This document shows, piece after piece, positions 26,773 to 27,913 of a stretch of 41,227 nt of DNA. This DNA comes from Octopus bimaculoides. Taxonomy: Eukaryota. The stretch is taken from assembly GCF_001194135.2 (NCBI RefSeq), contig NC_068985.1, positions 11,205,779-11,247,005 on the forward strand, written 5' to 3'. The stretch's first letter is position 1, and each line of letters begins with the position of its first letter. A program made the position numbers and the translations under genes. A model generated the notes under the pieces. It was not told the origin of the DNA, did not search any database, and saw nothing but the letters and a program-made list of their open reading frames with translations.

Positions 26773-27081
26773 TACTTTCTAGTACTTTACTAGGTTCATA
26801 TTAATACCATTTATCAGTATGTTCAAATCCTACCTTTCTTCATAGCTCTCAGTGGATTGCTCTCCTTAGATTGTCATATCTTTTCTTGTATTCTTTCTGT
26901 GCTAGCATGCTACATTCACTTACTATACGAGTAACATTTTCCTCTTTTCTTTTGCATAATCTACATTAGAAATCTACTTGTTTTTTTTTATCTATCTTGG
27001 CTTTTATTCAATTAGTCCTTAATGTTTGATCTTATGCAGCTACTAACAAACTTTCTATCTCCCTTTTCAGGTTTCCTTTCT

Positions 27082-27314
27082 TATTTCTTTATTGCCCACA
27101 AGGGGCTAAACATAGAGGAGACAAACAAGGACAGACAAAGGGATTAAGTCGATCACATCGACCCCAGTGCGTAACTGGTACTTAATTTATCGACCCCGAA
27201 AGGATGAAAGGCAAAGTGGACCTCGGCGGAATTTGAACTTAGAACGTAAAGACAGACGAAATACCGATAAGCATTTCGCTTGTCGTGCTAACGTTTCTGC
27301 CAGCTCACTGCCTT
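27082..27314 (-). mobile_element. Full-length S1 SINE (tail type A)
   Basis: Close match to 32020-32247. Confidence 0.93.
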
Positions 27315-27322
27315 ATTTGTTG

Positions 27323-27376
27323 TTCACGCGGATAGCCGCGCTCTTCATCGACGGACGAGTCGAGTGTTCCCCCGTC
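27323..27376 (-). pseudogene. 5.8S rRNA 5' fragment (retrocopied)
   Basis: Minus strand GACGGGGGAACACTCGACTCGTCCGTCGATGAAGAGCGCGGCTATCCGCGTGAA aligns without gaps to the conserved metazoan 5.8S 5' region as I recall it (GCGGTGGATCACTCGGCTCGTGCGTCGATGAAGA-CGCAGC-AGCTGCG-GAA). Confidence 0.85.
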
Positions 27377-27913
27377 CAGGTTTCCTTTCTGCAGCCATAA
27401 CCATGTCTCACTTCTACTATTTGCAGAAAATAACTTTGGGAATCTACCATGCAACGCCTTCTCAAGACAGTCAGATAATTTCTGTTCTTTTTTCTGTTTT
27501 TTTTTTATAGTTCGTTTGGTGTTTTGGTTTCCCTATGGCTTGCTGTGACTCTAGCAGCTTTTAATAAACTTTCTTCACTATTAGCTATATAGGAGTCTAT
27601 ATCTACTCTAGCTAACTCCACGAAGTTTTCCACTCATATCAACCCTTTTCCAGCTTCCTTTCTAGGTTCTTGCAAACCCTGACCTTGGGTGGAGTCCTCC
27701 ATTCATATTGAATTCGTTCCTAGTTCTTCTCTGTAGCCTTGCTAATTCAGTTTTTGTCCAATCTACAAAAGCTGTTGAGTATGTAAGTAATTTTTAATAA
27801 ACTTTCTTCTCTGTTACCTACGTAGGAATCTCTATCTATTCTAGCTAACTCCACGCAGTATTCTACTGATATTAACCGTCTTCCACTTTCCTTTCTAGGT
27901 GAGTATAATCTTG

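Follow-up and report, generated by a model that had tools for sequence, protein, structure and literature searches.

The window, a 41,227-nt stretch of the Octopus bimaculoides genome, carries on its minus strand a composite insert within a decayed retroelement ORF. Read in its own orientation, the insert is 295 nt long and consists of a 54-nt 5.8S rRNA-like segment (27323-27376), a 10-nt A-rich filler, CAACAAATAA (27313-27322), and a full-length SINE of 231 nt (27082-27312), which was recognized by its similarity to other copies in the window. Both parts lie in the same (minus) orientation, with the 5.8S-like piece at the 5' end and the SINE tail at the 3' end. The minus strand from 27376 to 27323 reads GACGGGGGAACACTCGACTCGTCCGTCGATGAAGAGCGCGGCTATCCGCGTGAA, and the SINE, from 27312 to 27082, opens with the bases GGCAGTGAGCTGGCAG and runs from GGCAGTGAGCTGG to GGGCAATAAAGAAATA. 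A first-pass annotation of this DNA had noted a short linker between the two parts; its presence was confirmed and its length corrected from 8 to 10 nt, because the SINE consensus begins at GGC (27312).

The insert is enclosed by two exact copies of a 14-bp direct repeat, CAGGTTTCCTTTCT (AGAAAGGAAACCTG on the minus strand), which form a target-site duplication (TSD) at 27377-27390 on the 5' side and at 27068-27081 on the 3' side in element orientation. The earlier placement of these copies around both parts held, in that a search of the window with up to one mismatch placed the 14-mer at exactly these two sites, compared to a chance expectation of 0 such pairs in 100 shuffles. The TSD is exactly 14 bp long, because the neighboring bases outside the two copies differ. 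The host minus strand ends in TGGCTGC ahead of the copy at 27390-27377 and reads AAAAGGGAG after the copy at 27081-27068. For the two copies to agree at 14/14 positions, the probability would be 0.23 if each had diverged by 5% and 0.04 if each had diverged by 10%.

The host is the C-terminal zinc-knuckle region of a decayed retroelement ORF, which lies at 26777-27067 (minus strand) downstream of the insertion and at 27391-27472 (minus strand) upstream of it. In tblastn searches with the paralogous ORF at 5118-6158, the two host parts form a continuous alignment only when 27082-27390 is removed, upon which the alignment grows from query positions 113-213 to 85-213, with no gap at the junction, 36% identity, and E=2e-17. 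Across the junction, SWAWLERGDLKRTAECLIIAAQ is aligned to TWLWLQKGNLKREIESLLVAA*. This result bears out the earlier claim that removal of the insert and one TSD copy restores the host frame, where the host peptide stated at that time, SETWLWLQKGNLKREIESLLVAA, aligns with SWAWLERGDLKRTAECLIIAAQ. The earlier description needs correction on one point, which is that the host ORF is already decayed. Because it contains stop codons, we conclude that the host copy is a dead retroelement fragment, and was so then or has become so since.

A database homolog of the paralogous ORF shows a weak zf-RVT match, which fits the C-terminus of a non-LTR retrotransposon ORF2 and lends this assignment modest support. 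The paralog itself is an intact 347-aa ORF at 5118-6161 (plus strand) that corresponds to this C-terminal part of the retroelement, with 36% identity to the host copy; no Pfam domain was detected in it, the database has no record of the ORF itself, and its nearest database homologs (ENA, JGI) are only ≈45% identical. A further decayed relative of the host ORF lies at 3712-4605 (plus strand). Elsewhere in the window, at 21341-22104 (minus strand), lies the remnant of a hAT-type transposase (FAM200/ZBED5/GTF2IRD2-like), decayed and interrupted by a frameshift and stop codons. Among the database proteins closest to this remnant are ones from Palaemon carinicauda, a shrimp, which reach 79% identity across part of the query, and from Styela, a tunicate; one Octopus bimaculoides UniRef entry matches it with 65% identity.

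The 5.8S rRNA-like segment

Identity of the 54-nt segment with 5.8S rRNA, which had been proposed in the first-pass annotation, was upheld by significant alignments of 27323-27376 to the Rfam 5.8S model (RF00002, 5_8S_rRNA), with E values from 1e-7 to 1e-5. When a 461-nt region was searched, the model matched 27242-27383 on the minus strand with 36 bits and E=1.1e-7; when only 27310-27392 was searched, the hit was 3'-truncated and paired minus-strand 27310-27383 with model positions 1-75, at 31.2 bits and E=4.5e-7. In a search of the whole window, the locus was the sole rRNA-like match (E=9.6e-6). The gathering cut-off of RF00002 is 42 bits, and Rfam searches at gathering thresholds accordingly reported nothing across the window. 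The scores of 36 and 31.2 bits fall below this cut-off because only ≈55 of the 154 model positions are present, and the genuine similarity spans positions of about 9-63. Other sub-threshold Rfam matches in the window, at 1762-1879, 9887-10130, 11973-12172, 16317-16397, and 30641-30985, were to microRNA models (mir-297, mir-3149, mir-466, and others); these matches were rejected as low-complexity artefacts, as they fall on TA/CA-type simple repeats and score well below gathering.

Within the segment, both the universal core of 5.8S rRNA, UCGAUGAAGA.CGC, and the hairpin that follows it are present. The 16-mer of the universal core, CGTCGATGAAGAGCGC, is exact and occurs once in the window. The four-pair hairpin (model positions 44-47/54-57) is intact, with no non-canonical mark, and it carries a G-C pair where the Rfam consensus has a-u; this hairpin variant had 0 matches in JGI metagenome contigs, a negative that is uninformative on this genome, and a literature search found no cephalopod 5.8S sequence in print. 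The filler was rejected as a continuation of the 5.8S sequence (positions 64-75), where only ≈3 of its 10 bases match by eye and the posterior probabilities of the covariance model drop. Based on these alignments, we conclude that 27323-27376 is a 5.8S-like fragment that is truncated at both ends, and not a gene.

The segment departs from canonical 5.8S rRNA more than the rest of the insert would predict. About 7-9 of 52 positions differ from the near-invariant metazoan sequence, as judged from the human reference and from the Rfam consensus, and several of these differences fall at positions that the consensus marks as highly conserved. The segment is identical to human 5.8S rRNA at 43 of 52 positions (human positions 11-62), a value that serves as a lead only. 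Given the ≈5% divergence of the SINE part, ≈2.7 changes would be expected in the 5.8S piece, and the probability of at least seven is ≈0.02. Because the differences exceed this prediction, mature functional 5.8S rRNA may not have served as the template, which could instead have been a divergent rDNA variant or the transcript of a pseudogene. By contrast, the retained hairpin and the retention of all seven canonical CpGs argue against heavy decay of the 5.8S piece; these seven CpGs are kept while the SINE head has CpG transitions, in numbers too small for inference. A-to-I editing was rejected as the source of the differences, just one of the ≈nine changes being A to G.

The SINE and its copies in the window

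The window contains ≈13 copies or fragments of the SINE, including that of the insert. The insert SINE is 93.3% identical to the copy at 32020-32244, whose 5' end, GGCGAGCTGG, adjoins its own 8-bp TSD, AGATAAAC, and is 83% identical to the copy at 15801-16020, which opens with the consensus GGCGGCGAGC. The insert SINE is complete at its 5' end, because its first bases, GGCAGTGAGC, equal GGCGGCGAGC except for two CpG transitions. The 231-nt element is therefore full length, as had been stated earlier. Its head, which bears the box-B-like motif GTTCAAATTCC, is followed by a conserved core and by a type 1 tail that ends in AATAAAGAAATA. Over the ≈130 positions of head and core that the copies have in common, the insert SINE differs from the majority of the other copies at 7, and we judge its divergence from the consensus of these copies to be about 5%. 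No tRNA was recognized in the SINE head by ARAGORN, run on the window, or by Rfam at E≤0.05, and the box-B-like motif is visible by eye. For this reason, we withhold the label tRNA-derived and describe the element as a SINE with a box-B-like motif, whose multi-copy nature is shown.

The SINE copies are alike through the head and core, to about GTACCAGTT, beyond which they split into at least two to three groups with unrelated 3' tails. The type 1 tail is found at 27082-27312, 32020-32244, and 15801-16020, a second tail at 38201-38358, 37196-37337, and 15650-15800, and a third tail at 29418-29574. These differing tails suggest subfamilies with different LINE partners. Both resolvable TSDs of tail-1 copies (27068-27081 and the region of 32012-32019) start with AGA(A/T)AA and resemble the SINE terminal AGAAATAA, which hints at target priming on the RNA tail through microhomology.

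Head-to-tail SINE abutments without a spacer occur at 15650-16060 and 15056-15268. In the former, a full-length tail-1 copy (16020-15801, minus strand) has a tail-2-like 3' fragment ahead of it and a copy truncated at approximately SINE position 15 directly after it; in the latter, a tail-1 end at 15149/15147 adjoins a SINE copy truncated at about position 45. Insertion directed at SINE tails, or jumps of the RT from one SINE RNA to another, could account for such abutments. Three SINE-bearing segments (37196-37337, 37921-38019, and 38201-38358) carry the same private variants over the stretch that was aligned and are separated by N gaps; either the region was duplicated locally in the recent past or the assembly is redundant around these gaps. 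Tandem Repeats Finder reported no tandem array at these segments.

Origin of the composite insert

We favor a single retrotransposition event that gave rise to a one-off chimeric retrocopy, by template switching or by prior RNA ligation, and we assign this reading a probability of roughly 0.6. The reverse transcriptase (RT) of the partner LINE would have primed on a nick in the target AGAAAGGAAACCTG, copied the SINE RNA in full, starting at its AATAAAGAAATA tail and reaching its 5' end, and then carried on to a second template, which may have been a 5' fragment of 5.8S rRNA or of a 5.8S-like transcript, with about 10 filler bases at the template junction. Copying would have stopped near 5.8S position 10, and second-strand cleavage 14 bp away would have generated the TSD. 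Alternatively, the two RNAs could have been ligated before reverse transcription, which would yield the same product. We infer the copying order, the template switch itself, and the genome-wide uniqueness of this locus. The filler resembles neither the next bases of 5.8S rRNA nor the 5' ends of other SINE copies, and candidate sources for it are untemplated addition, a short third template (a SINE or LINE tail), and the tail of an earlier retrocopy.

Four features together are the signature of a LINE-mediated chimera: one TSD pair, the same orientation of both parts, a 3' tail of the type recognized by the RT, and a complete 3' partner followed by filler. Moreover, the position of the 5.8S part 5' of the SINE, in the same orientation, is the geometry expected when an RT passes beyond the 5' end of a SINE RNA and onto another RNA, and twin priming was rejected because the two parts share one orientation. 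The identical TSD copies and the SINE at ≈5% from its consensus fit one fairly recent event. Counting against a one-off event are the internal end of the 5.8S piece (at approximately position 63 of 154), the excess of 5.8S differences, the 7-bp AAATAAG around the SINE, and the 8-bp length of the only other clean TSD of this SINE.

The AAATAAG sequences at 27318-27312 and 27086-27080, which directly bracket the SINE, would be expected if the insert had been assembled by two independent insertions, in which a 5.8S fragment with a short A-rich tail arrived first and produced the 14-bp TSD, and the SINE arrived later by using this tail as a microhomology target, so that the short TSD of this second insertion, AAATAAG, would be masked by the SINE tail. 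Such a history would agree with the 8-bp TSD of the other copy, which is nearer to 7 than to 14 bp, with the AGA(A/T)AA start that the 8-bp and 14-bp TSDs share with the SINE tail and that suggests a preference for tail-like targets, and with the head-to-tail abutments in the window. However, the 3' AAATAAG is not independent evidence, because the consensus SINE tail has it (the copies at 32020 and 15801 also end in AAAGAAATAAG), and the same 7-mer recurs at such a spacing by chance at ≈1.4% of window positions. Two insertions would also require a rare solo retrocopy of a 5.8S fragment, which has no obvious tail for RT recognition, followed by a SINE within a few bases of its end and in the same orientation, and we consider this history quite unlikely. 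The earlier statement that both parts arrived together is the most parsimonious account of the single TSD pair and the shared orientation, and it falls short of proof, as AAATAAG also brackets the SINE alone. Far less credible is an artefact, in which unrelated reads were joined in an assembly that is rich in gaps (N runs at 28035, 28688, and 30450, among others) or in which the 54-mer resembles 5.8S rRNA by chance. There are zero Ns within 26700-27700, a perfect TSD inside a collinear host ORF is not what a mis-join yields, and the match to 5.8S rRNA, which contains the exact core 16-mer, keeps an E of ≈1e-5 even when the whole window is the search space.

Another possibility, which we regard as somewhat unlikely, is that a longer transcript from a source locus was retrocopied as a unit, as in 5' transduction, where a SINE elsewhere in the genome lay right behind an old 5.8S pseudogene fragment in which the transcript began; such a source could have left anything from a few to many daughters that share the junction, and hence a small composite family. 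The 5.8S part looks more diverged from its canonical form than one would predict from the SINE part and the perfect TSD, which fits an older pseudogene as the template. SINEs in the window often adjoin the A-rich tails of earlier retrocopies (15650-16060 and 15056-15268), which makes a SINE behind a 5.8S retro-fragment with the A-rich tail CAACAAATAA plausible, and added sequence ahead of tRNA-type SINE heads has precedents in molluscs and in Deu-SINEs (PMC4758252). Nevertheless, this scenario takes more steps than a template switch, the head is found on only 1 of the ≈13 SINE copies or fragments in the window, and a 2024 review table of rDNA-derived TE sequences, which lists 5S, 28S, and IGS, contains no 5.8S-derived element (PMC10946416).

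Transcription from such a locus bears on the same question. The box-B-like GTTCAAATTCC is located in the tRNA-type head, downstream of the 5.8S piece. With a type 2 Pol III promoter inside a SINE head, transcription should start near the first base of the SINE itself, and 5.8S rRNA, which Pol I transcribes, has no internal Pol III promoter and no promoter of its own. Daughter copies driven by Pol III would thus be expected to drop the 5.8S head, and propagation with the head would need read-through from an upstream promoter. A self-propagating 5.8S-headed family is therefore disfavored, on purely mechanistic grounds.

Searches for other copies gave the following results. Among the other copies or fragments of the SINE in the window (≈12), 0 had the 5.8S head, and no second copy of the junction CGCGTGAACAACAAATAAGGC was found in the window with up to 3 mismatches allowed. 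The chimeric ORF at 27167-27400 (plus strand), which spans the SINE, the junction, and the 5.8S part, yielded 1 candidate and no matches in a collection of 5.8 billion proteins, which evidently does not contain the ORFs of this genome. The SINE core had 0 matches in each of the metagenome, prokaryotic-genome, and viral contig sets, a result that is not informative on this genome, and the SINE was absent from four ENA and Logan loci, which belong to other organisms and were reached through homologs of the hAT-like remnant. The first-pass annotation had left open a one-off switch or a 5.8S-headed SINE family; of these two, the one-off chimera is better supported, because of the single TSD pair, the same orientation, the full-length SINE, the junction filler, and the lack of another headed copy. 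There is a slim chance that the 5.8S-filler-SINE unit is not unique, either as a small propagating subfamily whose 5' extension derives from 5.8S rRNA or because 5' fragments of 5.8S rRNA are a recurrent template-switch partner for this SINE/LINE system, in which latter case many independent chimeras with similar 5.8S end points would exist. Either case would constitute the first TE lineage or recurrent chimera class on 5.8S rRNA to be found by our literature search.

Comparison with known chimeras and rRNA-headed SINEs

If the insert is a one-off chimera, it records that template switching, or the use of ligated RNAs, is open to the RT that mobilizes this non-poly(A) SINE, as it is to mammalian L1, and fragments of 5.8S rRNA join the RNAs known to be captured in this way; this would be a useful data point and not a surprise. 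If many junctions were found genome-wide, they would point to the birth of a composite element or to a preferred nucleolar RNA partner in a SINE-rich genome.

Sense-oriented LINE-1 chimeras contain U6, U3, 5S, 28S, and tRNA partners, often as RNA fragments, and their sense orientation is taken as a pointer to template switching or ligation (PMC13174262). Like the U6, U3, 5S, 28S, tRNA, and Alu-L1 chimeras of mammals and the tripartite MINE of Magnaporthe, the octopus insert joins two unrelated RNAs head to tail in the same orientation (PMC13174262, PMC2104539). As in LINE chimeras, the element recognized by the RT is at the 3' end, an abundant nuclear or nucleolar RNA is at the 5' end, and one TSD pair surrounds both, and as in the 5S, 28S, and tRNA chimeras, the RNA partner is a fragment (PMC13174262). 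Unlike in L1 chimeras, the 5' partner is 5.8S rRNA, which is missing from the chimera catalogues surveyed; the L1 catalogue lists U1-U6, U3, 5S, tRNA, 28S, 7SL, Y, and 7SK and does not mention 5.8S (PMC13174262). In addition, the 3' partner here is a complete SINE with a non-poly(A) tail, and the insert differs from the mammalian and fungal chimeras in its cephalopod host, its 10-nt filler, and a 5.8S piece that is truncated at both ends. In contrast to U6/L1 chimeras, where the small RNA is 3'-complete, the 5.8S part stops at about 63 of 154. The insert has the structure of a template-switch or ligation chimera except for 3' completeness of the 5' partner and, perhaps, for the AAATAAG repeat around the SINE alone, whose 3' copy coincides with the consensus tail of the SINE.

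An rRNA piece 5' of a SINE body is the arrangement that gave rise to composite families (PMC4758252, PMC10946416), and the insert shares it with SINE3/AmnSINE1, other 5S-headed SINEs, SINE28 (28S 3' end), and the Deu-SINEs, in which 5S is fused upstream of a tRNA head (PMC4758252). Unlike the octopus insert, which is known from one copy, these rRNA-headed SINEs are multi-copy, and a 5S head provides them with a Pol III promoter. The 5.8S piece provides none, and the tRNA-type head lies downstream of it, so that the 5.8S piece would not be re-transcribed.

The 5' halves of 5.8S rRNA (74-76 nt) and shorter 5' fragments are plentiful in zebrafish eggs and mouse sperm (PMC6468398), and by analogy with these germ cells, a 5' fragment of 5.8S rRNA is a plausible germline template. 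The captured piece likewise comes from the 5' part of 5.8S rRNA (positions of about 10-63); its end point lies at ≈63, or at ≈73 if the filler is included. The SINE itself can be likened, by description and not by sequence, to the Octopus SINEs OK, OR1, and OR2 (Ohshima and Okada 1994, cited in PMC4758252) in being short, abundant, and non-poly(A), with a box-B-like motif and a conserved central domain; the repeats of the window and the Octopus bimaculoides protein match also agree with a cephalopod. Our literature search found no report of 5.8S as the rRNA partner in such chimeras, and the insert most likely represents a known class of chimera, here with a 5.8S fragment and with a SINE instead of a LINE as the mobilized element.
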